Below are positions 7,531 to 64,000 of a stretch of DNA of 64,000 nt, piece by piece. A program made the translations under genes and the position numbers. How positions within the stretch are numbered: the first letter of the stretch is position 1; each line of letters begins with the position of its first letter. A model generated the notes under the pieces. The model was not told the origin of the DNA. It ran no database searches and saw only the letters and a list, made by a program, of their open reading frames with translations. Location: the NCBI GenBank assembly GCA_002269645.1, contig NIVC01001147.1:138129-202128 (forward strand), written 5' to 3'. This stretch comes from Macrostomum lignano. Its lineage: Eukaryota.

Positions 7531-7574
7531 GTGAGAGACTGTCTATATCGAGACTAACTCATTATTGTACGACT

Positions 7575-8445: not shown

Positions 8446-8471
8446 CTGATCCTGCTTTTGCAATCGCGCAG

Positions 8472-9535: not shown

Positions 9536-10194
9536 CAGGATGCTGTATCCAATATACTACATGTATCGAAGAAGTTAATTTTATAAGCAGTTATAGTGTT
9601 TAATTTTATGTTTCCTCATTCCGAAATAAAATAATTGACAAACTGGGACTTACTCATTACTTTGCTCCAGTTGAAAATAACAAAATTGACACATTTTTTC
9701 GCAGTTTCCTATTTTCCTACGATTTTTTTGCGCTAAATTCAAATTTCTATGCTGGACCCTCGATTGTAGCCTGGAACTGAAGGCTTGCTCGAATAAGCTG
9801 TTCACACCTTATATACCCTGACAGTTAATGAAGATTACTTACTAATGTATTTTTTCATTCTTTTTTCTCATTAAATAAATTTGTTATTTCACAGTTGAAA
9901 TTTCTTTTAACGCGCCGGATGCGGATTTAAACGCGTTTTAATAAAATTCATTAATCATTTCTGAATCATTAATCGTTCTTATATAGAAACGAGGCCAACT
10001 CCTCCGTTGGCGGAGTGAGGGGATAGAACTCCCATCGCCAGAATTTCATTCCCCGAAACCATCAGCTGAATCCAATGACACGAATCCCATCGTCCAAATC
10101 CTCTCCAAATCCTATATTAACCTCCCAAAAACCATGTTGTTTTACCTGTGTGCAAAAATTGACTGCCTGCCATCGTCCAGACTGAGACTCTCGT

Positions 10195-11770: not shown

Positions 11771-13444
11771 TCTGACGGACTGAAAGCGCCGATAATCAAA
11801 CCAATTGAAATTTGTTACCCGCCTCCTCCATTACTGAATTTACTCAAATGATAGCTGGCCTGAATTTGTGTACTCAACCCCCCCCCCCAACTACAATCTT
11901 GGCAGAAATTTTAAAAGTATGGAATCGTTTTTTCAATGCTGTGCTTTTTGTTTTCATATTTAAAGCAAATAACTTATATCCCCGAATTCAGCGTTGCAAG
12001 ATCCTTCCAGCAATATAAGTCTCTCCTCTCAAAGTTAAAAAAAAGGAACAGTTAACGTCTGAACTTCCCGGTTCAAAGCATTAAGTATCGAGTGTACATT
12101 CACCTGCCTGCTGTTTATTCATTGAATTTCACTGCCCAGCTAATATACAGACAGGCTGCCTTTTGAAAGGCGCCGATAGTAAAACCAATTGAATCTCGAC
12201 ACAGTCCTATCTATCTGTTTACAATGTACATTGCTATGTACACTCAGCCCAAACCAACCCTCCGTTCTGGAGGGAAGCATTAAATTTAACTGAACCCCCC
12301 AACACGCGGGGGTTTTATTAGCATTGAACCCAGAACACGCATCAACCACCCCTCCAATACACAGCGACCTGCGGGGGGAGGTTGGGGTGGTTGTTTTTAC
12401 AATAATGCCACTGGAGAGGCAAAGTGGCCAAAGAAGGTTAAGAAAACAGCTTTTTGCTTTTTTAACGGACTTGACTTTTAATTTTTCAACATTAAAATAG
12501 CCTATTTGTTGCGTAGGAAAATTCTGAATTGATATATGTAAGTCCCGCATTTGAGTTGCCAGCCGTCTAGGAGGAGATACGCGTTAAACCCGGCCGGTCG
12601 ATCGACCCACTCAGCTTTAGATATAAGATAATTCTTAATTAGAAAATAAATACACTGCGGAGATAGTAAAACATCATTTCTTTCTTCACAAAATCAATGA
12701 TTGTGTAAGAATTTAATGTAAATTAAGGAAAGGAAAAGAGCTAGGCGATGATTCTTATTTTATTTGGTTAAAAGACAGCGGAGTAAGAAGTAAGGAGAAG
12801 TAAAGAATTATTCGCGGTTGGCACCGTTTATTTATAGCCATCGCCGGAAACTTCTAGAACATTCTAAGCATTATAACAAAACAAGTATTAATTATTGATT
12901 CCTATTAGATTTGAATTAATTTTAGTACTGCCTTACTGTAATAAATTGTACATTGAATATTTATAAATGCGAGTATTTTAATTAGTTACTGTAAGAGAAC
13001 TTTCTAGAATTTAATTTGTCCTCTAGGGGGAAATTTCTAGAAATAAATATTTAATTTAGCATGCACAACACGTTTGTCTGATGTATTTTATATAGTTATG
13101 TAGTTTCATTTTCCTTATCGTGTTGTTTTTTATTTCATAAGTCCAAGCCAAAGTTGGAAATACTCACAAGTGAAATTTTCGTTTTTTGGTTGAATTGTGT
13201 ATATATATTTTTTTCCAGGAAATTGGCCTCCTAAAAAATTACGCGATCTTAGAGTCTTACGTCCTGTTATACAATTCTGATGTATCAACAGGATAAAATA
13301 TATCATAGCATAAAATTCAACTGGCAAATTCTTGATAGAACAATTGCGAAAGCTATTTAAATGCAGTGAAGTTTAGTGGGCTGTTATCAAGAAATTAAGT
13401 TTTGGATCGAACTGCACAGCAGACTAGCAATCCATTTCCCTCGA

Positions 13445-25959: not shown

Positions 25960-26057
25960 TAAACATTGAGTTCCTGTAGTTGCATTATATTTATACGCTC
26001 GTAGCTATTGCGTTGAATTTTTCAGTTTGCGTTAGATATGCTCTCAAATTGATGGTC

Positions 26058-27030
26058 AATACCCAATACCCAATACCCCAATACCCCAACACCCCAATAT
26101 CCGATACCCAATACCCAATACCCAATACCCCAACACCCCAATATCCGATACCCCAATACCCAATACCCAATACCCCAATACCACAATATCCCAATACCCA
26201 ATACCCGAATACCCAATACCCAATACCCAATACCCCAATACCCAATACCCAATACCCAATACCCCAATACCCAATACCCCAATACCCAATACCCAATACC
26301 CAATACCCAATACCCAATACCCCCATACCCAATACCCCAATACCCAATACCCCCATACCCAATACCCCAATACCCAATACCCCAATACCCAATACCCCCA
26401 TACCCAATACCCCAATACCCAATACCCCCATACCCAATACCCCAATACCCAATACCCCAATACCCAATACCCCAATACCCAATACCCCAATACCCAATAC
26501 CCCAATACCCAATACCTAATACCCGAATACCCAATACCCGAATACCCAATACCCAATACCCAATACCCAATACCCCAATACCCAATACCCCAATACCCAA
26601 TACCCCAATACCCAATACCCCAATACCCAATACCCCAATACCCAATACCCCAATACCCCAATACCCCAATACCCAATACCCAATACCCCAATACCCAATA
26701 CCCAATACCCCAATACCCAATACCCCAATACCCAATACCCCAATACCCAATACCCCAATACCCAATACCCAATACCCAATACCCAATACCCAATACCCAA
26801 TACCCAATACCCAATACCCCAATACCCAATACCCAATACCCCAATACCCAATACCCCAATACCCAATACCCCAATACCCAATACCCAATACCCAATACCC
26901 AATACCCCAATACCCAATACCCAATACCCAATACCCAATACCCCAATACCCAATACCCCAATACCCAATACCCCAATACCTAATACCCCAATACCCAATA
27001 CCCAATACCCAACACCCCATACCCCAATAG
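26058..27030. repeat. (CCAATA/CCCAATA)n 6/7-mer simple repeat
   Basis: About 970 bp of mixed 6- and 7-mers. Confidence 0.95.
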
Positions 27031-28529
27031 CCAATGCGCACCAAATAGAAAATGAAACCAGTATAAGTCCAACACAATATGTTTTTATTTAGAAAGCTTA
27101 TCAAATTAAACTGCTTTAAATACCAGACGTTGATCCGTTGTGAACGAGGCGTGCACAGCTGCTGGCACCATTGAGGCACCCTCCAAAAAATGCGTTTAGG
27201 AGTTCAAGAGCCATGCAGGTTAAAGTTTTGTGCCGGATTTGTGCGGATAAACTGCCTACCAAGCTTCTCCCAGCCTCCGTCAGCACTCTCCATTCTCTCT
27301 CTCTCTTTCTATGGCCGGAAGTGGGTCATCCTGCCTCATCCCTCGCCTCCCATTTCATCCATTTGATTGAATGGGGCCACACAGGGAGGGGGGAGAGATG
27401 ATGCAGCCCCCACTTCCAATTGAGGAGTATTATCCGAATTTTCATAGTTTAGCATTCCCAAGCCTTCCCAATCTGCCTATATCTATATTTATGTATATAT
27501 ATATATATATTTCTCATAACTATACTCGCATCCAGTCGCTTCCGGAAGCGCCTAACTAACTATATAAATAGGCAGCTTCAGCTATTTCTCTATGGAATTT
27601 CTGTATAGACAAAAAACAGTTCTGCTGCAGCGAGTCAGGTAGTGGATGGGGGAGCTGCTGGAGTCCAATTCAATTAGAAGACTGCTCAATCAGAGCCATG
27701 ATGGAGCTCATCTGTTTCCCAACAAGGCAGAAGTTTTCAAACAATAGCTTTGAACACAGCAGCAGCAGCTACGCGAAACAATAGCGGAGGTCGCAGCCTC
27801 TCTCCGAGCGCGCTCCATCATGCAAGCTTCCTGTCGACTCAACCAGACACTCTCTGATGGGCTTTGAGTCCCCCAACGCCCACTTTAGGCTTTTGCCCAG
27901 AACTTCCTGACTGCATTTTCTGGGTGAAGTATTTTTTGTCATTGCTTTGCTTTTGACCTTAGTCCACTTTGCGAGGCTCTCTCTGGCTTCCGACATTTTC
28001 CCGCTAAACCTGTCTGCTCAGCTCTGTCTCTTTGTCCTTATTTATTCCACTTGCTTTGGCAATTCGTCCAAGGGTGTCTAAACAGAGCATCTGGACTGTG
28101 AACGACTAATCTATATGCTTGGACGTCTAGCATATAAGATCCAGTCCAGATCATACGAGAGGTTGTCCTTGGCTCTGCATGCTTCGAATACCGCCCGAGA
28201 ATGAGACATCAAAAGAAGAAAGACAGCCGAGTCAAACCCTGCTCAGGTCTCGGCGGGAGCAGCCAAGCCAGGCTAATAAATGGGATTTATGACCACTGGG
28301 GAGTACTGGGGGCCATCCTGATGGTTATGGCTTTTGGGATAAATAATGATGCTTCATTACGATGCCCGGCTCAGCGTCCCTGCCGAGTGATAAAAAACTT
28401 GCGACTTCCCTCGCCATCATTCTTGCTACTGTCCGCTCTTCAGCCTCCCCGGAGACCAGCCTCATCAGACATGGGAGCCTGCCTTTATTTTCACAGCCAT
28501 CGGGTTCTGCTGTGGCACTCCTAGTGTGG

Positions 28530-30435: not shown

Positions 30436-31034
30436 TCTCAACTGTTTCCTCTGCTTAACAACAGATATTCATAACTTTTGACAATAAATACACAATTTTT
30501 GTTTTTCTGTAAGAGGTTTCAATGGCTCAGCCACGTTCTCCATCAATAAGTTCTCTTCTTATTCGAACTATAATATTTACTAAACATTCCTGATATCTTC
30601 GATTCAAAAAAAACTTGCTTTAACCTGTGCACCTTGCTAATAATATCAATTTCTCAACTTAAGTGATTGCTTTTAGTTAACCGAACTGACGACAATGCTT
30701 GTTTTGTCTTAAACTGCTTGATTTTTAATTCAAAATTAGCATAAAATTATTTATCTCGCTGTTGTTTTCATTCACTGAGCAATCGTTCTTTATTGATTCT
30801 CTCGTCTTTATATAGTTTTAGCAGCCCCTGTTGCACCAAAGTGATTTCTGTTTAAAGTGAGCGCAGCACCCATGGCAACTAAAATATCGACACTTTTCGT
30901 TGTGCAATATTGGCTGAAAACTGATGATACGAGCTATTGGCCGTCGCTTGCAAAGCGAGTCGCCATTCTAAATAAAACACGCTTCTTTCCACAAAATTTA
31001 ATTAGCTCACTTTCTGCTAGTCAATTAGTTATTC

Positions 31035-32225
<1,191 letters not shown>

Positions 32226-42592: not shown

Positions 42593-42879
42593 CCGCTTTT
42601 TTACGGCGCTATTCGCTACTGTCTACTGATCTTAAGCTGAGTAGTACAGTATGCAAGTTGGCACTGTTTGTCAAGTTTAAAGTTTGATGCAATTTCATTT
42701 TAATAAAAATTGTGAAATATTTCAATACAAGCCGTCATAATTTGTTCATTGCCGACATTGTCTTTTAATTCTCTTTGGCTGCTATGTTCGCTAAAATATG
42801 TTTTCAGAAAATAAACTTTCTGTCTTATTTCTGTCTTTTCTGAAGACGGGTCACCGCCGCCGCAAGCCTCTCAAATCCC

Positions 42880-43100
42880 CAGTTGCTTTGCCTGCCTCCC
42901 AGATCCCCAGTTGCTGGGCCAGCCTCCCAGATCCTCAGTTGCTGTGCCAGCCTCCCAGATCCCCAGTTGCTAAGCCAGCCTACCAGATCCTCAGTTGCTG
43001 GGCCAGCCTCCCAGAGTGTCAGTTGCTGGGCCAGCCTGCCAGATCCACAGCTGCTGGGCCAGTCTTCCAGATCCTCAGCTGCTAGACCCCCTGCCAGATC
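42880..43100. repeat. 28-bp minisatellite (ccagatccccagttgctgggccagcctc)
   Basis: Between the convergent RAE1 and C2-like genes. Confidence 0.85.
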
Positions 43101-43295
43101 CTTAGGCTCTGAACCAACTTCCCATACACTATCTCAATCAAAATGATCGAAAACATCGAATGGACACAGAACAGAAGCACGGATATTCAGCAAGGCTGGC
43201 GCGGTCAATAAGACATTGTTAATCAAGCGACTCTTTATCGTGTAAGCTTAACATTCCGGTCAGAGATTAGCCTCCCGGATGCGTGTTAGCCGGAG

Positions 43296-47481: not shown

Positions 47482-47862
47482 NNNNNNNNNNNNNNNNNNN
47501 NNNNNNNNNNNNNNNNNNNNNNNNNNNNNNNNNNNNNNNNNNNNNNNNNNNNNNNNNNNNNNNNNNNNNNNNNNNNNNNNNNNNNNNNNNNNNNNNNNNN
47601 NNNNNNNNNNNNNNNNNNNNNNNNNNNNNNNNNNNNNNNNNNNNNNNNNNNNNNNNNNNNNNNNNNNNNNNNNNNNNNNNNNNNNNNNNNNNNNNNNNNN
47701 NNNNNNNNNNNNNNNNNNNNNNNNNNNNNNNNNNNNNNNNNNNNNNNNNNNNNNNNNNNNNNNNNNNNNNNNNNNNNNNNNNNNNNNNNNNNNNNNNNNN
47801 NNNNNNNNNNNNNNNNNNNNNNNNNNNNNNNNNNNNNNNNNNNNNNNNNNNNNNNNNNNNNN
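47482..47862. other. Assembly gap (381 N)
   Basis: Run of N. Confidence 1.
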
Positions 47863-50800
47863 CAACTGCGCCTCTAGCTTCAACCGTGTCTATTTGTCTA
47901 AAGAAACTGACTGCGTGCAAAATACAAGTGTACGGAAGCAGAATAACACGCCGTGAGCGTATTTTCGAACAGCCTGTGCATGCGCGAGACTGCTTGGTGT
48001 AGTTATTAGAAGGCAACTGCGCCTCTAGCTTCAACCGTGTCTATTTGTCTAAAGAAACTGACTGCGTGCAAAATACAAGTGTACGGAAGCAGAATAACAC
48101 GCGTGAGCGTATTTTCGAACGCCTGTGCATGCGCGAGACTGCTTGGTGTAGTTATTAGAAGGCAACTGCGCGCCTCTAGCTTCAACCGTGTCTATTTGTC
48201 TAAAGAAACTGACTGCGTGCAAAATACAAGTGTACGGAAGCAGAATAACACGCCGTGAGCGTATTTTCGAACGCCTGTGCATGCGCGAGACTGCTTGGTG
48301 TAGTTATTAGAAGGCAACTGCGCCTCTAGCTTCAACCGTGTCTATTTGTCTAAAGAAACTGACTGCGTGCAAAATACAAGTGTACGGAAGCAGAATAACA
48401 CGCCGTGAGCGTATTTTCGAACGCCTGTGCATGCGCGAGACTGCTTGGTGTAGTTATTAGAAGGCAACTGCGCCTCTAGCTTCAACCGTGTCTATTTGTC
48501 TAAAGAAACTGACTGCGTGCAAAATACAAGTGTACGGAAGCAGAATAACACGCCGTGAGCGTATTTTCGAACGCCTGTGCATGCGCGAGACTGCTTGGTG
48601 TAGTTATTAGAAGGCAACTGCGCCTCTAGCTTCAACCGTGTCTATTTGTCTAAAGAAACTGACTGCGTGCAAAATACAAGTGTACGGAAGCAGAATAACA
48701 CGCCGTGAGCGTATTTTCGAACGCCTGTGCATGCGCGAGACTGCTTGGTGTAGTTATTAGAAGGCAACTGCGCCTCTAGCTTCAACCGTGTCTATTTGTC
48801 TAAAGAAACTGACTGCGTGCAAAATACAAGTGTACGGAAGCAGAATAACACGCCGTGAGCGTATTTTCGAACGCCTGTGCATGCGCGAGACTGCTTGGTG
48901 TAGTTATTAGAAGGCAACTGCGCCTCTAGCTTCAACCGTGTCTATTTGTCTAAAGAAACTGACTGCGTGCAAAATACAAGTGTACGGAAGCAGAATAACA
49001 CGCCGTGAGCGTATTTTCGAACGCCTGTGCATGCGCGAGACTGCTTGGTGTAGTTATTAGAAGGCAACTGCGCCTCTAGCTTCAACCGTGTCTATTTGTC
49101 TAAAGAAACTGACTGCGTGCAAAATACAAGTGTACGGAAGCAGAATAACACGCCGTGAGCGTATTTTCGAACGCCTGTGCATGCGCGAGACTGCTTGGTG
49201 TAGTTATTAGAAGGCAACTGCGCCTCTAGCTTCAACCGTGTCTATTTGTCTAAAGAAACTGACTGCGTGCAAAATACAAGTGTACGGAAGCAGAATAACA
49301 CGCCGTGAGCGTATTTTCGAACGCCTGTGCATGCGCGAGACTGCTTGGTGTAGTTATTAGAAGGCAACTGCGCCTCTAGCTTCAACCGTGTCTATTTGTC
49401 TAAAGAAACTGACTGCGTGCAAAATACAAGTGTACGGAAGCAGAATAACACGCCGTGAGCGTATTTTCGAACGCCTGTGCATGCGCGAGACTGCTTGGTG
49501 TAGTTATTAGAAGGCAACTGCGCCTCTAGCTTCAACCGTGTCTATTTGTCTAAAGAAACTGACTGCGTGCAAAATACAAGTGTACGGAAGCAGAATAACA
49601 CGCCGTGAGCGTATTTTCGAACGCCTGTGCATGCGCGAGACTGCTTGGTGTAGTTATTAGAAGGCAACTGCGCCTCTAGCTTCAACCGTGTCTATTTGTC
49701 TAAAGAAACTGACTGCGTGCAAAATACAAGTGTACGGAAGCAGAATAACACGCCGTGAGCGTATTTTCGAACGCCTGTGCATGCGCGAGACTGCTTGGTG
49801 TAGTTATTAGAAGGCAACTGCGCCTCTAGCTTCAACCGTGTCTATTTGTCTAAAGAAACTGACTGCGTGCAAAATACAAGTGTACGGAAGCAGAATAACA
49901 CGCCGTGAGCGTATTTTCGAACGCCTGTGCATGCGCGAGACTGCTTGGTGTAGTTATTAGAAGGCAACTGCGCCTCTAGCTTCAACCGTGTCTATTTGTC
50001 TAAAGAAACTGACTGCGTGCAAAATACAAGTGTACGGAAGCAGAATAACACGCCGTGAGCGTATTTTCGAACGCCTGTGCATGCGCGAGACTGCTTGGTG
50101 TAGTTATTAGAAGGCAACTGCGCCTCTAGCTTCAACCGTGTCTATTTGTCTAAAGAAACTGACTGCGTGCAAAATACAAGTGTACGGAAGCAGAATAACA
50201 CGCCGTGAGCGTATTTTCGAACGCCTGTGCATGCGCGAGACTGCTTGGTGTAGTTATTAGAAGGCAACTGCGCCTCTAGCTTCAACCGTGTCTATTTGTC
50301 TAAAGAAACTGACTGCGTGCAAAATACAAGTGTACGGAAGCAGAATAACACGCCGTGAGCGTATTTTCGAACGCCTGTGCATGCGCGAGACTGCTTGGTG
50401 TAGTTATTAGAAGGCAACTGCGCCTCTAGCTTCAACCGTGTCTATTTGTCTAAAGAAACTGACTGCGTGCAAAATACAAGTGTACGGAAGCAGAATAACA
50501 CGCCGTGAGCGTATTTTCGAACGCCTGTGCATGCGCGAGACTGCTTGGTGTAGTTATTAGAAGGCAACTGCGCCTCTAGCTTCAACCGTGTCTATTTGTC
50601 TAAAGAAACTGACTGCGTGCAAAATACAAGTGTACGGAAGCAGAATAACACGCCGTGAGCGTATTTTCGAACGCCTGTGCATGCGCGAGACTGCTTGGTG
50701 TAGTTATTAGAAGGCAACTGCGCCTCTAGCTTCAACCGTGTCTATTTGTCTAAAGAAACTGACTGCGTGCAAAATACAAGTGTACGGAAGCAGAATAACA

Positions 50801-53800
50801 CGCCGTGAGCGTATTTTCGAACGCCTGTGCATGCGCGAGACTGCTTGGTGTAGTTATTAGAAGGCAACTGCGCCTCTAGCTTCAACCGTGTCTATTTGTC
50901 TAAAGAAACTGACTGCGTGCAAAATACAAGTGTACGGAAGCAGAATAACACGCCGTGAGCGTATTTTCGAACGCCTGTGCATGCGCGAGACTGCTTGGTG
51001 TAGTTATTAGAAGGCAACTGCGCCTCTAGCTTCAACCGTGTCTATTTGTCTAAAGAAACTGACTGCGTGCAAAATACAAGTGTACGGAAGCAGAATAACA
51101 CGCCGTGAGCGTATTTTCGAACGCCTGTGCATGCGCGAGACTGCTTGGTGTAGTTATTAGAAGGCAACTGCGCCTCTAGCTTCAACCGTGTCTATTTGTC
51201 TAAAGAAACTGACTGCGTGCAAAATACAAGTGTACGGAAGCAGAATAACACGCCGTGAGCGTATTTTCGAACGCCTGTGCATGCGCGAGACTGCTTGGTG
51301 TAGTTATTAGAAGGCAACTGCGCCTCTAGCTTCAACCGTGTCTATTTGTCTAAAGAAACTGACTGCGTGCAAAATACAAGTGTACGGAAGCAGAATAACA
51401 CGCCGTGAGCGTATTTTCGAACGCCTGTGCATGCGCGAGACTGCTTGGTGTAGTTATTAGAAGGCAACTGCGCCTCTAGCTTCAACCGTGTCTATTTGTC
51501 TAAAGAAACTGACTGCGTGCAAAATACAAGTGTACGGAAGCAGAATAACACGCCGTGAGCGTATTTTCGAACGCCTGTGCATGCGCGAGACTGCTTGGTG
51601 TAGTTATTAGAAGGCAACTGCGCCTCTAGCTTCAACCGTGTCTATTTGTCTAAAGAAACTGACTGCGTGCAAAATACAAGTGTACGGAAGCAGAATAACA
51701 CGCCGTGAGCGTATTTTCGAACGCCTGTGCATGCGCGAGACTGCTTGGTGTAGTTATTAGAAGGCAACTGCGCCTCTAGCTTCAACCGTGTCTATTTGTC
51801 TAAAGAAACTGACTGCGTGCAAAATACAAGTGTACGGAAGCAGAATAACACGCCGTGAGCGTATTTTCGAACGCCTGTGCATGCGCGAGACTGCTTGGTG
51901 TAGTTATTAGAAGGCAACTGCGCCTCTAGCTTCAACCGTGTCTATTTGTCTAAAGAAACTGACTGCGTGCAAAATACAAGTGTACGGAAGCAGAATAACA
52001 CGCCGTGAGCGTATTTTCGAACGCCTGTGCATGCGCGAGACTGCTTGGTGTAGTTATTAGAAGGCAACTGCGCCTCTAGCTTCAACCGTGTCTATTTGTC
52101 TAAAGAAACTGACTGCGTGCAAAATACAAGTGTACGGAAGCAGAATAACACGCCGTGAGCGTATTTTCGAACGCCTGTGCATGCGCGAGACTGCTTGGTG
52201 TAGTTATTAGAAGGCAACTGCGCCTCTAGCTTCAACCGTGTCTATTTGTCTAAAGAAACTGACTGCGTGCAAAATACAAGTGTACGGAAGCAGAATAACA
52301 CGCCGTGAGCGTATTTTCGAACGCCTGTGCATGCGCGAGACTGCTTGGTGTAGTTATTAGAAGGCAACTGCGCCTCTAGCTTCAACCGTGTCTATTTGTC
52401 TAAAGAAACTGACTGCGTGCAAAATACAAGTGTACGGAAGCAGAATAACACGCCGTGAGCGTATTTTCGAACGCCTGTGCATGCGCGAGACTGCTTGGTG
52501 TAGTTATTAGAAGGCAACTGCGCCTCTAGCTTCAACCGTGTCTATTTGTCTAAAGAAACTGACTGCGTGCAAAATACAAGTGTACGGAAGCAGAATAACA
52601 CGCCGTGAGCGTATTTTCGAACGCCTGTGCATGCGCGAGACTGCTTGGTGTAGTTATTAGAAGGCAACTGCGCCTCTAGCTTCAACCGTGTCTATTTGTC
52701 TAAAGAAACTGACTGCGTGCAAAATACAAGTGTACGGAAGCAGAATAACACGCCGTGAGCGTATTTTCGAACGCCTGTGCATGCGCGAGACTGCTTGGTG
52801 TAGTTATTAGAAGGCAACTGCGCCTCTAGCTTCAACCGTGTCTATTTGTCTAAAGAAACTGACTGCGTGCAAAATACAAGTGTACGGAAGCAGAATAACA
52901 CGCCGTGAGCGTATTTTCGAACGCCTGTGCATGCGCGAGACTGCTTGGTGTAGTTATTAGAAGGCAACTGCGCCTCTAGCTTCAACCGTGTCTATTTGTC
53001 TAAAGAAACTGACTGCGTGCAAAATACAAGTGTACGGAAGCAGAATAACACGCCGTGAGCGTATTTTCGAACGCCTGTGCATGCGCGAGACTGCTTGGTG
53101 TAGTTATTAGAAGGCAACTGCGCCTCTAGCTTCAACCGTGTCTATTTGTCTAAAGAAACTGACTGCGTGCAAAATACAAGTGTACGGAAGCAGAATAACA
53201 CGCCGTGAGCGTATTTTCGAACGCCTGTGCATGCGCGAGACTGCTTGGTGTAGTTATTAGAAGGCAACTGCGCCTCTAGCTTCAACCGTGTCTATTTGTC
53301 TAAAGAAACTGACTGCGTGCAAAATACAAGTGTACGGAAGCAGAATAACACGCCGTGAGCGTATTTTCGAACGCCTGTGCATGCGCGAGACTGCTTGGTG
53401 TAGTTATTAGAAGGCAACTGCGCCTCTAGCTTCAACCGTGTCTATTTGTCTAAAGAAACTGACTGCGTGCAAAATACAAGTGTACGGAAGCAGAATAACA
53501 CGTAGTGAGCGTATTTTCGAACGCCTGTGCATGCGCGAGACTGCTTGGTGTAGTTATTAGAAGGCAACTGCGCCTCTAGCTTCAACCGTGTCTATTTGTC
53601 TAAAGAAACTGACTGCGTGCAAAATACAAGTGTACGGAAGCAGAATAACACGCCGTGAGCGTATTTTCGAACGCCTGTGCATGCGCGAGACTGCTTGGTG
53701 TAGTTATTAGAAGGCAACTGCGCCTCTAGCTTCAACCGTGTCTATTTGTCTAAAGAAACTGACTGCGTGCAAAATACAAGTGTACGGAAGCAGAATAACA

Positions 53801-54201
53801 CGCCGTGAGCGTATTTTCGAACGCCTGTGCATGCGCGAGACTGCTTGGTGTAGTTATTAGAAGGCAACTGCGCCTCTAGCTTCAACCGTGTCTATTTGTC
53901 TAAAGAAACTGACTGCGTGCAAAATACAAGTGTACGGAAGCAGAATAACACGCCGTGAGCGTATTTTCGAACGCCTGTGCATGCGCGAGACTGCTTGGTG
54001 TAGTTATTAGAAGGCAACTGCGCCTCTAGCTTCAACCGTGTCTATTTGTCTAAAGAAACTCACTGCGAGCAAAATACAAGTGTACGGAAGCAGAATAACA
54101 CGCCGTGAGCGTATTTTCGAACGCCTGTGCATGCGCGAGACTGCTTGGTGTAGTTATAAGAAGGCAACTGCGCCTCTAGCTTCAACCGTGTCTATTTGTC
54201 T
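47863..54201. repeat. 150-bp satellite DNA, left array (~42 monomers)
   Basis: Exact 150-bp period (sequence lines recur every 300 bp); virtually no variants between ~48300 and 54000. Confidence 0.99.
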
Positions 54202-54368
54202 GGTCCGACCGGGCGTAGCTTGGTTGGGTGTTAAACCAGTGGGGCGTGGCTCTTGTGCGTTGGTGCGGGGGTGGTGGGCCGGGCCTTGGTCACGTGCCCG
54301 CGGCCTGGGTGGCGGTTTTTTAATGCGGCGCGGGCTGTCGCTGACCCGCCAAGCGCGTATTGATTTTT
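54202..54368 (+). repeat. Split direct repeat A1
   Basis: Matches A2 (58248-58415) except for one extra G and one C/T substitution. Confidence 0.95.
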
Positions 54369-54376
54369 ATGTTGTT

Positions 54377-55458
54377 ATGTTGCAATGTTATTATGTTGCC
54401 CACGCTAACATAAGCAGTCGGGGCAACAAGGCCGACCTTGTCAGCGCCCTGCTCGCAGCCCCAGACCAGTCGTGGACAGATTCGCTGTTGCAGAACATGG
54501 AGCAATCTGAGCAAGAAGCCGAAGCAGACGACAACATCAGTACGGAGGCGGCTCGGGAGTCGGCGGCGGGCCTGGACGAGGACATCGCGAAGGCGGAGAA
54601 GGAGATCAGACTGTTGCAGCTACGCAAGGAAGCCGCTCAACTCAAGAGGGAGATCGGAGATCTGCAGCGCGAGTGTCCATCCACGCGTCCTATGAATCGC
54701 GGTGAGTGTGCCAAGCCTGCTGGCCCCAGTTACTTTCCTGATGGGTGTGATGATGCTGGATTAGACCAAGAAGATAATGGCAATGAGCTGCTTGACAGAT
54801 TGTTGTCACAGAACAGGGCCAATGAACGGATGGAGTCTTCTGGTAGACGTAAGGCTCTCCTGGTTCGTGATTTCCTCGACGGCTTTGAGCAGGAAGAGGT
54901 GCTGGCTAATGGTTCTGGTGGCCGAATCACTTACAAGAGCAGAAAACCTAATCCAGATAGCATCACGGCAGCGCAGTATTTGGTAGGCAATTGCAGGCTG
55001 ATGATGCAGATGATCAAGGATGGTGCCCTGGTGACTAGTAGAAATGGAACTGCCGACACGACTGATTTGATGAATTACTTACGCTACTCAATACAGATTG
55101 GCGAGCTGTTTGACGGGGCTTCGGCCTGGCGCAGGTGAATCGTTTTGACGAGGACTACCGCACTAGGCAAGCTGAAACTGGCATGCGATGGGGCAAGGAG
55201 TCTTTCCAACTCGTTGCTAAGCACTTAATCAGAACTGGAACTCCAGCAAACCATGGAGTCAGCAAGTCATTGCCCCAGCCACGGCAGCAGCGTTTTCAAA
55301 AACCAATAGACCCCAAGAGCCTCAGAACGCCAGACGGGGAAGAGATCTGCTTGCACTTTAATCGCCGGGGGTGCTTCCGGTCGAGCTGCAAATTCCGGCA
55401 CGTCTGCCGCATCTGTTTCGAGGCCCACCCTGAGGCCAACCATTCGACAAAAAACTGA
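54377..55458 (+). CDS. gag-like ORF1 (coiled coil, C-terminal CCCH-type zinc finger), split by a 1-nt frameshift near 55128
   Basis: 54377-55138 continues in another frame at 55135-55458; CLHFNRRGCFRSSCKFRH (C-x7-C-x4-C-x3-H) is followed by CRICFEAH. Confidence 0.8.
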
Positions 55459-55466
55459 AGTCTGCG

Positions 55467-57278
55467 ATGCTCTGTTTTAATCCTAAAATTTTGCCTAATG
55501 CTCAGCCTGCTTTAAATTTTAACAATCCTGTCGTTGGCAGTGCAGGGGGTCGCCTGCGTTTTTGTTCGTGGGATTCTGAGCTTGAGAATGACCCTGATCG
55601 GAATTTTATCCTAGACGGCATCGCAAATGGTTTTCGCATTACTGATGGCAAAGGGCTTTGTGAGACTTTTAATGCCAATTACATGTCTACTTCTACTTTT
55701 CATCGCGCTGTTGAGCTGCAAATTAAGGAAGAGATTGAGAATGGCAGGTATTTGATTGTGCCTAAGAAGCCTACGATGGTCAGCCCTCTGGGAGCAATTC
55801 CCAAGGATAACGGGAAGGCTCGACTTATTCATGACTGCAGCACGCCTCCGGGCTACTCGGTAAATGACAACTATACGAAGAAGCTGAGCCCCAGGTTTGA
55901 GTCCGTCAAGAAGGTTGCAGCCTCTATCGGCAAGGGCTGGTTCATGGCAAAGCTTGACTTGTCGCAAGCTTACAGAAGCGTGGCGATCCATCCGGATGAT
56001 TACCAGGCGACCGGCATTGGTTGGCGTTTTAAAGGCAACCGTGATCTGACATGGCTTGTCGACACCCGGCTACCCTTTGGTAGCTGCGCCTCGGTCGAGA
56101 TTTTCTACCGGCTTACTCAAGCGGTCAAGAGGATGATGGTGCGACGCGGCGTGGCCAATATTTCGGTTTACCTGGATGATTTTCTGGTTGCAGCCGAGAG
56201 CGAGAAAGAGTGTATGGATGCTCTGAAAGAGCTGATTAAGCTGGTTCGCCAGTTAGGTTTTGGTGTCAATTGGAATAAAGTGGTTGAACCTACGCAATGC
56301 TTGGTGTATCTCGGTGTGAAGATTGATACTGTCCGTGGAGTTCTTAGTGTGCCGGCGGAAAAGTGTGAGGAAATGCGCACCACACTGCTTAACTTTTCGC
56401 AGCGCAGGCGTCTCTCGAAACGACAGCTTTCGTCGCTTTGTGGCAAGCTCAGCTGGGTCGTCCAGGTGGTGCACGCTGGGAGTTGCTTCCTAAGACCCCT
56501 GTTCGACCTGCTTAATGCCCTGGAAAAGCCACATCACAAAGTGCGTGTGTCCGCTGACACTGTGCGTATTTTACTCTGGTGGCGAGGTGCCCTTCTGAAG
56601 CTGCCTGATTTTCAGCTTTGGAGAAGTTGCACAAACGGCTGGATCATCGAAACCGATGCGAGCAGTGCTGGTGGCGGAGCCATTTTGCGCAATGGTAGCG
56701 GTATGGTGGATTGGCTGTACGTCAATTGGGATCTGGATGCTGGAGGAAAGTTTAAAGACAAGCATATCACGTACAAAGAAGCTATTGTTCCGCTGCTGGC
56801 TATGGTTCGCTGGGGTGCCTTTTTAAATGACAGTTCGGTCGTGGTCTACTCCGACTCTAGTGCGGCTGTTGGCATGATTAACAGAGGTTGCTGTCGGCAG
56901 CCTGAGTTGCAGCCGCTGTTCCAGACTGCCATGCTCATTGCTGTTAGGCGTGGGGTTGAGGTGCGCGCTTTTCATGTGCCTGGCTGGTACCATGTCTTTG
57001 CGGACCCGTGCTCTAGGCTGCACGCCGTGGACAAAATGCGCGATTTTTTATTTCGGGTGTATGGCTCTGTTGACTGCTGTTTTAACGAGATCGCTAGCCA
57101 TGCTTTCTGCCCTGCTGCCTCCGTTTTTCTCATTTTACAGGCCCTCCGCGCCAGACTCCCGACCGCCTCAGCAAGCGTTGCGCATTTATCCTGGGCAATG
57201 CCTACGCGCCCCGCACGAAGCGGAGTTACCGGTCGCAGCTCGCGTCTTGGCTGCGATTTTGCAATTCCCGGCACCTGA
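55467..57278 (+). CDS. Reverse transcriptase / RNase H (DIRS-type), 603 aa, uninterrupted
   Basis: SPLGAIPK..RLIHDCS, KLDLSQAY, LPFG, YLDDFL; RNase H motifs TDASS, KEAI, YSDS, ADPCSR. Confidence 0.95.
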   Translation: MLCFNPKILPNAQPALNFNNPVVGSAGGRLRFCSWDSELENDPDRNFILDGIANGFRITDGKGLCETFNANYMSTSTFHRAVELQIKEEIENGRYLIVPKKPTMVSPLGAIPKDNGKARLIHDCSTPPGYSVNDNYTKKLSPRFESVKKVAASIGKGWFMAKLDLSQAYRSVAIHPDDYQATGIGWRFKGNRDLTWLVDTRLPFGSCASVEIFYRLTQAVKRMMVRRGVANISVYLDDFLVAAESEKECMDALKELIKLVRQLGFGVNWNKVVEPTQCLVYLGVKIDTVRGVLSVPAEKCEEMRTTLLNFSQRRRLSKRQLSSLCGKLSWVVQVVHAGSCFLRPLFDLLNALEKPHHKVRVSADTVRILLWWRGALLKLPDFQLWRSCTNGWIIETDASSAGGGAILRNGSGMVDWLYVNWDLDAGGKFKDKHITYKEAIVPLLAMVRWGAFLNDSSVVVYSDSSAAVGMINRGCCRQPELQPLFQTAMLIAVRRGVEVRAFHVPGWYHVFADPCSRLHAVDKMRDFLFRVYGSVDCCFNEIASHAFCPAASVFLILQALRARLPTASASVAHLSWAMPTRPARSGVTGRSSRLGCDFAIPGT

Positions 57279-58141
57279 CGCCGCTGCGGGCAGAGCCTGT
57301 GCACGTGGCTGAATACCTGGCTGAGCTGTCCACCCGGCTGTCAGCCTTTCGGAGTTGCCAGGCGTATGCTAACGCGGTCTCGCTGTACTTCAGAGCTCTC
57401 GGCCGGCCGGACCCGTGCGAGTCGCCGATGGTTAAGCTGGTGCTTCGTGGTCTTCGCCGGTGTCTCAGTCGGCAGCAGCGCTCAAGGGAGCCATTCAGAG
57501 TCGCGGATCTCCTCAAGCTACACGCCCACCTGGACCAACGTCTGAAGAGTGACATCGCGTTCTGGGCAGCAGTTCTGGCAGCCTGGTGGGGTATGCTGCG
57601 AAAAGCGAATGTGACGACGCAATCGGGGCAGCTCGATCTGTGGTGCGACCTGGCAGCATCGAGCATCGTCTTTTCAGAGTACGACTGTGAGCTCACTGTG
57701 CGGCATTCGAAGACCAACCAGTTTGGCGATCGAGTTCAGCGAGTGTTTCTTCCGAAACTGCCTGATGGAAGCTTGTGTGTCCTGTGTCCGTTCCGTGCGC
57801 TCGAGCGGCAGCTACGGACAAACCGAATCGGCCAGGCGCCGCGTCCGGTTCACCTGTTCTCCACGTGGTCGTCCGCGGGATGGTTGCCTCTGACGGCTAG
57901 CAGGTTTGATAGCCGGCTTCGTTCGCTCTGCACATCGGCGGGTTTGTCGCCACGCGAGTTCACTGGCCACGGGCTGCGGCGGGGCGGCGCTACGGCAGCC
58001 ATGCAGCTCGGTGTTCCACTGCCGATGATCAAGAAGCTGGGCGACTGGAAGGGCAACTCAGTGTTTCGCTATCTATCTGTTCGGGACTCGGATGCCAGGG
58101 CGGCTGTGCATGGCTTGGCTCGTCGGGTTGGCGCGCTCTAA
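57141..58141 (+). CDS. Tyrosine recombinase (frame open from 57098; overlaps the RT ORF end)
   Basis: N-terminal AYAPRTKRSYRSQL..WLRFC; catalytic motifs LRKAN (R), HSKTNQ (K), GHGLRRGGAT (HxxR), LGDWKG (W), VFRYL (Y); first ATG only at 57428. Confidence 0.93.
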
Positions 58142-58185
58142 CTCTCTCTCTCTCTCTCTCTATGTCGAACTTTCTGGTTTGGGTT

Positions 58186-58565
58186 GGGCCAGGCTCGAAC
58201 CTGCGCCTCTCGTGCCAACTGCCTTGACTTCGTCTCACTGGTTTAATGGTCCGACCGGGCGTAGCTTGGTTGGGTGTTAAACCAGTGGGGCGTGGCTCTT
58301 GTGCGTTGGTGCGGGGGGTGGTGGGCCGGGCCTTGGTCACGTGCCCGCGGCCTGGGTGGCGGTTTTTTAATGCGGTGCGGGCTGTCGCTGACCCGCCAAG
58401 CGCGTATTGATTTTTTTTCTCGCTTTTAAGTCTCCAAGGTTTTTATTTGGCTTTTAGTCCGGTAAATTAAAGTTAATAAATACGCTCGAATACTCGTACA
58501 ATAGGGCCAGGCTCGAACCTGCGCCTCTCGTGCCAACTGCCTTGACTTCGTCTCACTGGTTTAAT
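58186..58565 (+). repeat. 3' split direct repeats B1-A2-(88-bp spacer)-B2
   Basis: B1 (58186-58247) and B2 (58504-58565) are identical over 62 bp; AATAAA at 58475 lies in the spacer. Confidence 0.95.
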
Positions 58566-61500
58566 AAAGAAACTGACTGCGTGCAAAATACAAGTGTACG
58601 GAAGCAGAATAACACGCCGTGAGCGTATTTTCGAACGCCTGTGCATGCGCGAGACTGCTTGGTGTAGTTATTAGAAGGCAACTGCGCCTCTAGCTTCAAC
58701 CGTGTCTATTTGTCTAAAGAAACTGACTGCGTGCAAAATACAAGTGTACGGAAGCAGAATAACACGTATTGAGCGTATTTTCGAACGCCTGTGCATGCGC
58801 GAGACTGCTTGGTGTAGTTATTAGAAGGCAACTGCGCCTCTAGCTTCAACCGTGTCTATTTGTCTTAAGACACTCACTGCGAGCAAAATACAAGTGTACG
58901 GAAGCAGAATAACACGCCGTGAGCGTATTTTCGAACGCCTGTGCATGCGCGAGACTGCTTGGTGTAGTTATTAGAAGGCAACTGCGCCTCTAGCTTCAAC
59001 CGTGTCTATTTGTCTAAAGAAACTGACTGCGTGCAAAATACAAGTGTACGGAAGCAGAATAACACGCCGTGAGCGTATTTTCGAACGCCTGTGCATGCGC
59101 GAGACTGCTTGGTGTAGTTATTAGAAGGCAACTGCGCCTCTAGCTTCAACCGTGTCTATTTGTCTAAAGAAACTGACTGCGTGCAAAATACAAGTGTACG
59201 GAAGCAGAATAACACGCCGTGAGCGTATTTTCGAACGCCTGTGCATGCGCGAGACTGCTTGGTGTAGTTATTAGAAGGCAACTGCGCCTCTAGCTTCAAC
59301 CGTGTCTATTTGTCTAAAGAAACTGACTGCGTGCAAAATACAAGTGTACGGAAGCAGAATAACACGCCGTGAGCGTATTTTCGAACGCCTGTGCATGCGC
59401 GAGACTGCTTGGTGTAGTTATTAGAAGGCAACTGCGCCTCTAGCTTCAACCGTGTCTATTTGTCTAAAGAAACTGACTGCGTGCAAAATACAAGTGTACG
59501 GAAGCAGAATAACACGTATTGAGCGTATTTTCGAACGCCTGTGCATGCGCGAGACTGCTTGGTGTAGTTATTAGAAGGCAACTGCGCCTCTAGCTTCAAC
59601 CGTGTCTATTTGTCTAAAGAAACTGACTGCGTGCAAAATACAAGTGTACGGAAGCAGAATAACACGCCGTGAGCGTATTTTCGAACGCCTGTGCATGCGC
59701 GAGACTGCTTGGTGTAGTTATTAGAAGGCAACTGCGCCTCTAGCTTCAACCGTGTCTATTTGTCTAAAGAAACTGACTGCGTGCAAAATACAAGTGTACG
59801 GAAGCAGAATAACACGCCGTGAGCGTATTTTCGAACGCCTGTGCATGCGCGAGACTGCTTGGTGTAGTTATTAGAAGGCAACTGCGCCTCTAGCTTCAAC
59901 CGTGTCTATTTGTCTAAAGAAACTGACTGCGTGCAAAATACAAGTGTACGGAAGCAGAATAACACGCCGTGAGCGTATTTTCGAACGCCTGTGCATGCGC
60001 GAGACTGCTTGGTGTAGTTATTAGAAGGCAACTGCGCCTCTAGCTTCAACCGTGTCTATTTGTCTGAAGACACTCACTGCGAGCAAAATACAAGTGTACG
60101 GAAGCAGAATAACACGCCGTGAGCGTATTTTCGAACGCCTGTGCATGCGCGAGACTGCTTGGTGTAGTTATTAGAAGGCAACTGCGCCTCTAGCTTCAAC
60201 CGTGTCTATTTGTCTAAAGAAACTGACTGCGTGCAAAATACAAGTGTACGGAAGCAGAATAACACGCCGTGAGCGTATTTTCGAACGCCTGTGCATGCGC
60301 GAGACTGCTTGGTGTAGTTATTAGAAGGCAACTGCGCCTCTAGCTTCAACCGTGTCTATTTGTCTAAGACACTCACTGCGAGCAAAATACAAGTTACGGA
60401 AGCAGAATAACACGCCGTGAGCGTATTTTCGAACGCCTGTGCATGCGCGAGACTGCTTGGTGTAGTTATTAGAAGGCAACTGCGCCTCTAGCTTCAACCG
60501 TGTCTATTTGTCTAAAGAAACTGACTGCGTGCAAAATACAAGTGTACGGAAGCAGAATAACACGCCGTGAGCGTATTTTCGAACGCCTGTGCATGCGCGA
60601 GACTGCTTGGTGTAGTTATTAGAAGGCAACTGCGCCTCTAGCTTCAACCGTGTCTATTTGTCTAAAGAAACTGACTGCGTGCAAAATACAAGTGTACGGA
60701 AGCAGAATAACACGCCGTGAGCGTATTTTCGAACGCCTGTGCATGCGCGAGACTGCTTGGTGTAGTTATTAGAAGGCAACTGCGCCTCTAGCTTCAACCG
60801 TGTCTATTTTGTCTAAAGAAACTGACTGCGTGCAAAATACAAGTGTACGGAAGCAGAATAACACGCGTGAGCGGTGAGCGTATTTTCGAACGCCTGTGCA
60901 TGCGCGAGACTGCTTGGTGTAGTTATTAGAAGGCAACTGCGCCTCTAGCTTCAACCGTGTCTATTTGTCTAAAGAAACTGACTGCGTGCAAAATACAAGT
61001 GTACGGAAGCAGAATAACACGCCGTGAGCGTATTTTCGAACGCCTGTGCATGCGCGAGACTGCTTGGTGTAGTTATTAGAAGGCAACTGCGCCTCTAGCT
61101 TCAACCGTGTCTATTTGTCTAAAGAAACTGACTGCGTGCAAAATACAAGTGTACGGAAGCAGAATAACACGCCGTGAGCGTATTTTCGAGCGCCTGTGCA
61201 TGCGCGAGACTGCTTGGTGTAGTTATTAGAAGGCAACTGCGCCTCTAGCTTCAACCGTGTCTATTTGTCTAAAGAAACTGACTGCGTGCAAAATACAAGT
61301 GTACGGAAGCAGAATAACACGCCGTGAGCGTATTTTCGAACGCCTGTGCATGCGCGAGACTGCTTGGTGTAGTTATTAGAAGGCAACTGCGCCTCTAGCT
61401 TCAACCGTGTCTATTTGTCTTAAACACTCACTGCGAGCAAAATACAAGTGTACGGAAGCAGAATAACACGCCGTGAGCGTATTTTCGAACGCCTGTGCAT

Positions 61501-64000
61501 GCGCGAGACTGCTTGGTGTAGTTATTAGAAGGCAACTGCGCCTCTAGCTTCAACCGTGTCTATTTGTCTAAAGAAACTGACTGCGTGCAAAATACAAGTG
61601 TACGGAAGCAGAATAACACGCCGTGAGCGTATTTTCGAACGCCTGTGCATGCGCGAGACTGCTTGGTGTAGTTATTAGAAGGCAACTGCGCCTCTAGCTT
61701 CAACCGTGTCTATTTGTCTTAAAGACACTGACTGCGAGCAAAATACAAGTGTACGGAAGCAGAATAACACGCCGTGAGCGTATTTTCGAACGCCTGTGCA
61801 TGCGCGAGACTGCTTGGTGTAGTTATTAGAAGGCAACTGCGCCTCTAGCTTCAACCGTGTCTATTTGTCTAAAGAAACTGACTGCGTGCAAAATACAAGT
61901 GTACGGAAGCAGAATAACACGCCGTGAGCGTATTTTCGAACGCCTGTGCATGCGCGAGACTGCTTGTGTAGTTATTAGAAGGCAACTGCGCCTCTAGCTT
62001 CAACCGTGTCTATTTGTCTAAAGAAACTGACTGCGTGCAAAATACAAGTGTACGGAAGCAGAATAACACGCCGTGAGCGTATTTTCGAACGCCTGTGCAT
62101 GCGCGAGACTGCTTGGTGTAGTTATTAGAAGGCAACTGCGCCTCTAGCTTCAACCGTGTCTATTTGTCTAAAGAAACTGACTGCGTGCAAAATACAAGTG
62201 TACGGAAGCAGAATAACACGCCGTGAGCGTATTTTCGAACGCCTGTGCATGCGCGAGACTGCTTGGTGTAGTTATTAGAAGGCAACTGCGCCTCTAGCTT
62301 CAACCGTGTCTATTTGTCTAAAGAAACTGACTGCGTGCAAAATACAAGTGTACGGAAGCAGAATAACACGCCGTGAGCGTATTTTCGAACGCCTGTGCAT
62401 GCGCGAGACTGCTTGGTGTAGTTATTAGAAGGCAACTGGCCTCTAGCTTCAACCGTGTCTATTTGTCTAAAGACACTCACTGCGAGCAAAATACAAGTGT
62501 ACGGAAGCAGAATAACACGCCGTGAGCGTATTTTCGAACGCCTGTGCATGCGCGAGACTGCTTGGTGTAGTTATTAGAAGGCAACTGCGCCTCTAGCTTC
62601 AACCGTGTCTATTTGTCTAAAGAAACTGACTGCGTGCAAAATACAAGTGTACGGAAGCAGAATAACACGCCGTGAGCGTATTTTCGAACGCCTGTGCATG
62701 CGCGAGACTGCTTGGTGTAGTTATTAGAAGGCAACTGCGCCTCTAGCTTCAACCGTGTCTATTTGTCTGAAGACACTCACTGCGAGCAAAATACAAGTGT
62801 ACGGAAGCAGAATAACACGCCGTGAGCGTATTTTCGAACGCGTGCATGCGCGAGACTGCTTGGTGTAGTTATTAGAAGGCAACTGCGCCTCTAGCTTCAA
62901 CCGTGTCTATTTGTCTAAAGAAACTGACTGCGTGCAAAATACAAGTGTACGGAAGCAGAATAACACGCCGTGAACGTATTTTCGAACGCCTGTGCATGCG
63001 CGAGACTGCTTGGTGTAGTTATTAGAAGGCAACTGCGCCTCTAGCTTCAACCGTGTCTATTTGTCTAAAGAAACTGACTGCGTGCAAAAATACAAGTGTA
63101 CGGAAGCAGAATAACACGCCCGTGAGCGTATTTTCGAACGCCTGTGCATGCGCGAGACTGCTTGGTGTAGTTATTAGAAGGCAACTGCGCCTCTAGCTTC
63201 AACCGTGTCTATTTGTCTAAAGAAACTCACTGCGAGCAAAATACAAGTGTACGGAAGCAGAATAACACGCCGTGAGCGTATTTTCGAACGCCTGTCTGCA
63301 TCGCCGAGACTGCTTGGTGTAGTTATTAGAAGGCAACTGCGCCTCTAGCTTCAACCGTGTCTATTTGTCTAAAGAAACTGACTGCGTGCAAAATACAAGT
63401 GTACGGAAGCAGAATAACACGCCGTGAGCGTATTTTTCGAACGCCTGTGCATGCGCGAGACTGTTGTGTATTATTAGAAGCAACTGCGCCTCTAGCTTCA
63501 ACCGTGTCTATTTGTCTAAAGAAACTGACTGCGTGCAAAATACAAGTGTACGGAAGCAGAATAACACGCCGTGAGCGTATTTTCGAGCGCCTGTGCATGC
63601 GCGAGACTGCTTGGTGTAGTTATTAGAAGGCAACTGCGCCTCTAGCTTCAACCGTGTCTATTTGTCTAAAGAAACTGACTGCGTGGCAAAATACAAGTGT
63701 ACGGAAGCAGAATAACACGCCGTGAGCGTATTTTCGAACGCCTGTGCATGCGCGAGACTGCTTGGTGTAGTTATTAGAAGGCAACTGCGCCTCTAGCTTC
63801 AACCGTGTCTATTTGTCTAAAGAAACTCACTGCGTGCAAAATACAAGTGTACGGAAGCAGAATAACACGCCGTGAGCGTATTTTCGAACGCTGTGCATGC
63901 GCGAGACTGCTTGTGTAGTTATTAGAAGGCAACTGCGCCTCTAGCTTCAACCGTGTCTATTTGTCTAAAGAAACTGACTGCGTGCAAAATACAAGTGTAC
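58566..64000. repeat. 150-bp satellite DNA, right array (~36 monomers, runs off the window)
   Basis: Same monomer as the left array, with scattered variant monomers and small indels. Confidence 0.99.

Follow-up and report, generated by a model that had tools for sequence, protein, structure and literature searches.

A 64,000-nt stretch of the Macrostomum lignano genome (assembly GCA_002269645.1, contig NIVC01001147.1, positions 138,129–202,128 of the forward strand), hereafter referred to as the window, harbors a Ngaro-like tyrosine recombinase (YR) retrotransposon of 4364 bp (TGGTCCGACC...CACTGGTTTAA, positions 54201–58564 of the window) that interrupts an array of a 150-bp satellite. The comparison of this element with the other copies retrieved suggests that a young member of a Ngaro-like family of M. 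lignano with a low copy number probably landed in the satellite by chance, rather than as the outcome of targeting. The most interesting result of the analysis is a by-product, i.e., the finding that the recombinase is made as a fusion between the N-terminal part of Gag and YR, encoded by a spliced mRNA.

Boundaries and Insertion Site of the Element

The element begins with TGGTCCGACCGGGCGTAGC and ends with CGTCTCACTGGTTTAA; its split direct repeats (on the forward strand, as are all the features of the element and of the array given hereafter) are A1 (54201–54368), B1 (58186–58246), A2 (58247–58415), and B2 (58504–58564). The initial annotation, drawn up from the sequence of this stretch, had described an A1-gag-reverse transcriptase (RT)/RNase H-YR-B1-A2-B2 architecture, which is confirmed by these coordinates and by domain searches, as are the identity of B1 and B2 and the two differences between A1 and A2 (99.4% identity), namely one substitution (54329, C/T) and one difference in the length of a run of G. 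Likewise, the internal B1|A2 junction, where the circle junction is reproduced, does read ggtttaa-T-ggtccgacc. The window contains exactly two occurrences of the terminal 22-mer and two of the 24-mer, versus zero expected by chance, and no inverted repeat pairs were found between positions 53000 and 60000. An AATAAA polyadenylation-like signal (58475–58480) is located 23 nt before B2, and a (CT)10 microsatellite (58142–58161), whose length differs among copies, lies just past the YR stop codon. The G-run within A (54262–54266 and 58308–58313) ranges from about 5 to 10 G among the copies and can also differ between A1 and A2 within one copy; both this run and the (CT)n tract are hypervariable and, hence, unsuitable for dating.

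The satellite flanks the element on both sides, from 47863 to 54200 (about 42 monomers) and from 58565 to 64000, where it extends past the end of the window; its period, as determined by Tandem Repeats Finder (TRF), is 150 bp. The start-to-start spacing of the monomers across the insertion is 4514, i.e., 150 + 4364, which means that the insertion accounts for precisely 4364 additional bp, without any loss or gain, and the two halves of the interrupted monomer, once rejoined, are identical to the consensus monomer, in full agreement with the early claim of a satellite cut without duplication or loss.

A T precedes GGTCCG at all the seven left junctions (7/7), whereas the base following GGTTTAA at the right end is T, T, T, A, A, and C at six junctions. 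Since the former is constant and the latter is variable, this T represents the first base of the element, which therefore spans positions 54201–58564. The initial annotation had placed the element at 54202–58565 and had considered a single T as common to element and target; its size and insertion hold, while the coordinates, affected by the ambiguity of the T at the 5′ end, had to be shifted on the basis of the comparison of copies, and the T turned out to be the element's own. The T that follows the right end in the window is satellite sequence, and no base needs to be shared by the circle junction and the target; in this, the element differs from DIRS elements, for which a trinucleotide common to circle junction and target has been reported (PMC7192593). 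A shared T acting as a 1-nt crossover core was also considered, and it is ruled out by the varying 3′ flanking base. Both ends of the element are invariant in all copies; thus, no trace is seen of the heteroduplex "coupling" sequences expected of a 6–8-bp staggered exchange in non-homologous DNA.

It is very improbable that the two junctions are an assembly artefact, i.e., that a transposon contig was chimerically joined to satellite reads. The array does start at a scaffold gap of 381 N (47482–47862) adjoining the satellite on its upstream side, and the contig on which element and array sit starts inside the satellite; because of this gap, the left edge of the satellite corresponds to a contig end and not to a natural boundary, and the tie between the array and the upstream 47 kb depends on scaffolding. 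In addition, the M. lignano assembly has been described as redundant and hard to build (PMC5730564), and 35 monomers in a row in the left part of the array (48201–53450) are all 100% identical, which might reflect either a very recent amplification or a polished/collapsed consensus; those of the right part (58565–64000) vary (96–100% identity, plus small indels), and some monomer variants are common to both sides of the insertion. However, both junctions fall at the same position of the monomer and restore a perfect consensus, and the ends of the element match to the base the termini defined by six independent loci, an outcome that a chimera would not yield.

Copies of the Family and Age of the Insertion

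The pol product of the element shares 96% identity with a UniRef protein of M. lignano, and YR is 98% identical to BOX15_Mlig028869g1. Other copies of the element were reached only through the clusters of YR and gag proteins (annotated gene models) in assembly GCA_002269645.1 (Mlig_3_7), whereas exact-protein queries with the pol of the window and with P0001 matched no contig. Full-length copies are located at loci L001, L002, L006, and L008, L003 is a 5′ fragment, L004 an internally deleted copy, and L007 duplicates the L006 copy in inverted form, sharing its flank. Counting L006 and L007 once, seven independent insertions were considered, i.e., the window and L001, L002, L003, L004a, L006, and L008.

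The full-length copies are 98.8–99.6% identical to that of the window, the nearest one being L008. Apart from two lesions in gag (see below), the window copy exhibits a single private substitution in 4.4 kb, which is the A1/A2 mismatch itself. Together with the identity of B1 and B2, these values support the insertion being recent, as had been proposed. Moreover, A1 and A2 carry copy-specific variants together (G-T-G in the window, L008, and L004a; T-A-A in the others), in keeping with the published model, where A1 equals A2 and B1 equals B2 at insertion, so that near-identical repeats are implied at that stage (PMC6681497).

As for the arrangement of single copies, contig NIVC01002140.1 carries three of them in about 23 kb (L006 9808–14203 and 17174–21119, the same as L007 9834–14181, and L004 9457–11138). 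In the L004 copy, A1 is joined to position 2837 of the element by an internal deletion; the other two are in inverted orientation and have identical outer flanks, which indicates that either the region underwent an inverted duplication or the assembly contains a palindromic artefact. A further YR-bearing contig, L005 (Logan SRR28338166, 1160 nt), shares 78% DNA identity with the element and might belong either to a related family or to a related species. The gag, YR, and gag-YR products of the family are present in GenBank as "hypothetical proteins" (BOX15_Mlig... at L001, L002, L004, L006, and L008). Since gene models overlapping annotated repeats were filtered and those of the family were kept, the family is probably missing from the Mlig_3_7 repeat library.

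Relationship between the Element and the Satellite

A satellite-targeting YR element would be unusual. The initial annotation had advanced this idea and had itself indicated the flanks of other copies as the test, which the idea fails: all the other insertions (6/6) have non-satellite flanks. The 150-bp monomer is absent within 10 kb of each of them, and no tandem array is interrupted by any of them, the closest one ending 186 bp from an insertion; their neighbors are ordinary genes and transposons (MFS transporters, Helitron, Kringle, TMEM144, and AIG1), and the six reconstructed target sites do not share any common motif. In the 11.8 kb of the window occupied by the array, the search with the terminal 22-mer and 24-mer disclosed neither a second copy of the element nor solo A/B remnants. 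Tandem repeats represent 13.1% of the M. lignano assembly, or 15% including simple repeats (PMC5730564 and its supplement), and the probability that, under random insertion, at least one of seven copies falls in a tandem repeat is about 0.63–0.68; with such a share of the genome, one insertion out of seven in a tandem array corresponds to the random expectation. Judging from these flanks, strict satellite targeting is excluded.

Some points weigh against chance as the explanation. The six loci were found through annotated gene models of Mlig_3_7, an assembly where satellites are probably under-assembled and from which repeat-overlapping models were filtered; this route makes the sample biased against satellite-embedded copies. 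Furthermore, a count of 0/6 sets the 95% upper bound at about 39% of copies in the 150-bp satellite, and a moderate bias toward the satellite appears possible at the level of the available copies.

A quantitative preference of the family for the 150-bp satellite or for heterochromatin, perhaps exerted through the SAP-like domain described below and concealed by satellite copies missing from the older assembly and annotation, is nevertheless unlikely. Besides the bias of the comparison sample, it might find support in the fact that the only copy observed where the satellite is better resolved is a clean and young insertion, and in the fusion between YR and a SAP-like DNA-binding domain. Moreover, the Ngaro types 1 and 2a of Cafeteria burkhardae, which share the architecture of the element, insert preferentially into endogenous virophages (82–91% of copies), and ORF1 (gag) has been proposed to set this integration-site preference (PMC8547959), a proposal that fits the gag-derived DNA-binding module travelling with the recombinase of the M. 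lignano element; DIRS-1, in turn, clusters in the centromeres of Dictyostelium (PMC7192593). However, the preference of the Cafeteria elements has been shown statistically, whereas here the corresponding figure is 0/6. The distance of those six insertions from the satellite and from the inside of any tandem array, the lack of a second copy or remnant in the array, the agreement with the 13–15% tandem-repeat share, and the lack of a motif common to the six target sites all argue for a chance insertion.

The initial annotation had also considered that the satellite might be centromeric. No support for a centromeric location was found in the window or in the papers retrieved; the literature searched provided no centromere data at the sequence level for M. 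lignano, and the searches for an M. lignano satellite sequence, or for DIRS/Ngaro in Macrostomum or in Platyhelminthes, gave nothing usable.

Coding Regions

The element contains four reading frames, each of which is in the −1 frame relative to the preceding one. In other copies (P0132, L002), the intact gag is one continuous open reading frame (ORF) of 372 amino acids, with an N-terminal SAP-like domain, an acidic stretch (probably a coiled coil), and a C-terminal CCCH zinc finger. The assignment of the SAP-like domain is based on a Pfam score that lies exactly at the cut-off (PF02037, E = 3e-5, 23.9 bits), and the comparison of this N-terminus with PDB gave no match. In the window, gag is affected by two private lesions, seen in no other copy. 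The first is a rearrangement at its start (54369–54396), consisting of a net 44-bp deletion plus substitutions, which has placed the native ATG out of frame and removed the first half of the SAP-like domain, and which provides a new in-frame ATG at 54377. The second one is a 1-bp deletion between 55115 and 55116, where the other copies have C or G; as a result, the first gag frame (54377–55138) is cut short by a stop codon at 55136–55138, and the C-terminal part (55114–55458), including the zinc finger (55348–55407), lies in the −1 frame. It must be taken into account, on the other side, that the 1-bp deletion might have arisen from an error of the assembly.

The pol ORF (55467–57278, 603 amino acids) is intact and free of private lesions. 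It matches RVT_1 (E = 7e-17) and RVT_thumb, and contains the YLDD motif of RT (56169–56180) and the RNase H motifs ETDAS and YSDS (RNase H at about 56649–57014). Neither PF05869 (Dam-like methyltransferase) nor any other non-RT match was found in pol at E ≤ 0.1, and the 603 amino acids are fully occupied by RT, thumb, and RNase H, leaving no room for a methyltransferase.

The YR frame (57098–58141) consists of 347 codons and has no ATG. It matches the Phage_integrase and SAM-like profiles, which correspond to a catalytic domain and a SAM-like core-binding domain, and it is related to the Cre recombinase (E = 7e-10) along an alignment spanning the motifs that carry the catalytic His, Arg, Trp, and Tyr of Cre; the motifs aligned with the Cre catalytic residues are GMLRKAN (Arg I), HSKT (Lys), HGLRRGG, GDWKG, and FRYL. 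No integrase ORF of the DDE type was found among the open reading frames of the element, and no extra hydrolase ORF is present. On the whole, the element had been regarded as structurally complete, with intact RT and YR frames. Both frames are indeed open, even though that of YR lacks its own ATG, and pol and YR are intact; structural completeness, however, applies to the architecture only, as gag is broken.

Classification of the Element

It is known that Ngaro-like elements have split direct repeats, among which the internal ones are situated downstream of YR, and are devoid of a methyltransferase; PAT-like elements combine repeats of the Ngaro type with a methyltransferase, and DIRS1-like ones contain inverted terminal repeats and an internal complementary region (PMC4157794, PMC3783388, PMC6681497). 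The element of the window exhibits several Ngaro features, namely a pol with RT and RNase H, a YR, the A1-[ORFs]-B1A2B2 repeats (arranged in this way in all the full-length copies, as well as in the relative L010), and neither a methyltransferase nor a target-site duplication. As to the latter, the exact addition of 4364 bp in the window and the lack of flanking duplications at five other loci (L001, L002, L004a, L006, and L008) bear out the early statement that integration occurred without it. With the Ngaro-like references (DrNgaro1, XtNgaro2, LvNgaro1/2, and SpNgaro3; order DIRS), which have the nearest RTs, the element also shares the lack of a DDE integrase; it differs from them in having an RT that belongs to a separate sister clade, a gag that begins with a SAP-like domain, a spliced Gag(N)-YR fusion, and no extra hydrolase ORF.

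A neighbor-joining (NJ) tree of RT sequences was constructed with 45 references (PMC6681497, supplement 16, virus sequences omitted) and capped distances, to which the RTs of the element, of P0002, of P0004 (M. lignano), and of P0032 (the coral Oculina patagonica) were added. The four added sequences form a clade with 100% support that is sister to the nine Ngaro-like references and not nested among them. The bipartition joining this clade and the Ngaro references has a bootstrap value of 87% with the published alignment and of 92% with a de novo alignment, while the clade joined DIRS + PAT in 0% of the bootstraps; in addition, the six best BLAST matches of RT are all Ngaro-like references. 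As far as YR is concerned, the best BLAST match is LvNgaro2 (5e-16), and the lowest mean distance is that from the Ngaro-like references. The YR tree, with a support of 8%, is uninformative in this respect. VIPER/TATE is the most distant group (3.5–3.9 for RT and 3.2–3.4 for YR), and the VIPER clade is recovered at 100% without the query.

The alternative that the element is PAT-like (order DIRS), having lost the methyltransferase secondarily, and does not belong to the Ngaro lineage is quite improbable. PAT-like elements (Pat1, Kangaroo, and Toc) do possess A1-B1-A2-B2 split direct repeats and, in some cases, a gag zinc finger; a methyltransferase loss mimicking Ngaro has been documented in a lineage of Caenorhabditis briggsae (PMC4157794); and, besides the poorly supported YR tree, the PAT-like YR of DIRS1_CGi is among the best matches and HGLRRGGAT resembles the PAT-like motif HSLRSGGAT. 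However, PAT-like elements have a methyltransferase and an RT that groups with DIRS, whereas the element has no methyltransferase and its RT joins the Ngaro-like references and never DIRS or PAT, with the best RT matches and the YR distances pointing in the same direction. The PAT-like features are, therefore, not present as a set. Neither are those of DIRS1-like elements: DIRS-1 of Dictyostelium discoideum is also a YR retrotransposon with an internal circle-junction template, residing in repeat-rich chromatin and causing no target-site duplication, but it has inverted terminal repeats, an internal complementary region, and a methyltransferase, whereas the element has direct split repeats and none of these. 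According to its sequence, the element is Ngaro-like, as had been recognized from the beginning, in a lineage that is sister to the references sampled.

A Spliced Gag(N)-YR Fusion

The GenBank protein BOX15_Mlig030865g1 (P0130, 453 amino acids) corresponds exactly to gag codons 1–118 joined to the YR frame, and it matches exactly the conceptual splice product of L002 (10362–12802, GTGAGT...AG). The annotation behind P0130 was built from RNA-seq-guided transcript assemblies, and the same donor is shared by P0121, P0129, and P0001. Both donor and acceptor are maintained in all the copies that still have the region, including that of the window, where exon 1 (54377–54701) contains the SAP-like remnant and the acidic, probably coiled-coil stretch of gag, and a 2439-nt intron (54702–57140; donor cgcg|GTGAGT, acceptor ttttctcattttacAG|gcc) takes out the C-terminal part of gag and all of pol, so that YR is translated from 57141. 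These data indicate that a subgenomic spliced mRNA encodes the recombinase in the form of a SAP-like/coiled-coil/YR fusion, which explains the existence of a YR ORF without a start codon. Starting from its new ATG (54377), the window copy could still give rise to the fusion, minus the first SAP helix; the frameshift at 55115 falls inside the intron.

Two other possibilities were considered and discarded. A −1 frameshift in the pol/YR overlap would require a slippery heptamer, which is not present, and the 98-nt intron of the P0001 model does not appear reliable, as P0001 looks like a frame-bridging ab initio model and it is the 2.4-kb intron that is supported by the RNA-seq-based P0130 and P0121.

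This way of splicing gag(N) to YR looks conserved, as far as can be judged from the DNA, in the coral relative L009 and in the relative L010. In Oculina L009, an ATG at 5938, a donor AGG|GTGAGC (6640/6641), and an acceptor ttccAG| (8897/8898) yield an open product of 569 amino acids (exons 5938–6640 and 8898–9904), which is the exact length of the gene annotated over 5938–9904. In L010, retrieved from an ENA assembly, the ATG-less YR frame follows a single strong acceptor (6577/6578), and an in-frame GTAAGA donor (4317/4318) is located at a gag position homologous to that of the Oculina donor. In both of them, the N-terminal exon encodes a Cys-rich CSGCKLP...H...C motif in place of SAP. As regards the repeats of L009 (5641–5995 and 10044–10431), they are arranged as X1Y1-ORFs-Y2-33 nt-X2, without any evident X copy upstream of Y2, and do not fit the A1...B1A2B2 scheme; this arrangement may derive from a tandem junction, or it may be a variant of the layout.

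In the searchable literature, no description of a spliced Gag(N)-YR or SAP-YR fusion was found for Ngaro; an earlier account may exist elsewhere. A comparable strategy is known for the env gene of retroviruses and errantiviruses, where the unspliced transcript serves as both genome and gag/pol mRNA, and splicing from a 5′ donor gives access to a downstream ORF without its own start. The two systems share one primary transcript, a donor close to the 5′ end, and a start-less downstream ORF; in contrast with env, the downstream product of the element is the integrating recombinase, fused in frame to an N-terminal domain of gag. A broader, unlikely idea is that, in a Ngaro-like clade embracing a flatworm, a coral, and one or more further eukaryotes, the recombinase is produced only as a Gag-N fusion via a conserved intron, and that the N-terminal module (SAP-like in M. 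lignano, Cys-rich in the other two) may steer the integration of the circle, entailing in M. lignano a bias toward heterochromatin/satellite hidden by the older satellite-poor assembly.

Proposed Life Cycle

The life cycle outlined here combines the published Ngaro/PAT model with the anatomy of the element, and its RNA ends, circular intermediate, and site neutrality are inferred. A full-length RNA would be read from within A1 to about B2, in accordance with the position of the AATAAA signal, and reverse-transcribed by the element's own RT/RNase H. The internal B1|A2 junction, the one copy of the circle junction seen in the sequence, would act as a template from which the B2|A1 junction of the circle, a double-stranded DNA, is rebuilt. 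The Cre-like recombinase would then join the circle to the chromosome conservatively, exactly at the B|A junction, and such an integration would add 4364 bp without target duplication or evident target sequence requirement. The unspliced RNA would serve gag, pol, and replication, and the spliced one the recombinase. As full-length gag is broken in the window copy, gag would be needed in trans; this copy probably persists since its insertion inside a satellite is nearly neutral.

Genomic Context of the Array

Upstream of the gap, the window (1–47481) contains about 20 unrelated minisatellite arrays with periods of 17–53 bp in 47 kb, and most of its long ORFs are artefacts of minisatellites or short repeats. 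A (TTAG)~300 array (31025–32225) and an array with a 7-bp unit, CAATACC (26057–27035), are also present. Two long CT-rich, pyrimidine-only tracts (10180–10720 and 11020–11790) each follow a similar header, aaaattgactgcc...catcgtccagactgagactctc, and are accompanied by a GC skew of −0.67 across 10–12 kb; tracts and headers look like a duplicated unit. The 28-bp minisatellite AGATCCTCAGTTGCTGGGCCAGCCTCCC occurs both in the window (42865–43102) and near the L001 copy of the element (L001 15944–16470), thus representing a dispersed minisatellite family.

Conclusions

As far as the evidence goes, the element itself is a known kind of retrotransposon, real, young, cleanly integrated, and placed in the satellite by chance. 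The Ngaro-like family to which it belongs is well defined, very young, and probably still capable of mobility in a model organism for regeneration; as it is probably absent from the repeat library, this family should be added to repeat libraries. The base-precise integration mediated by YR, in which neither a duplication nor a shared target motif is seen at the seven sites, is relevant to the question of target choice and cleavage by the YR retroelements of eukaryotes. The spliced fusion, with its SAP-like domain and its junction (54701|57141), provides a handle on the published idea that ORF1 sets the integration site of Ngaro elements.

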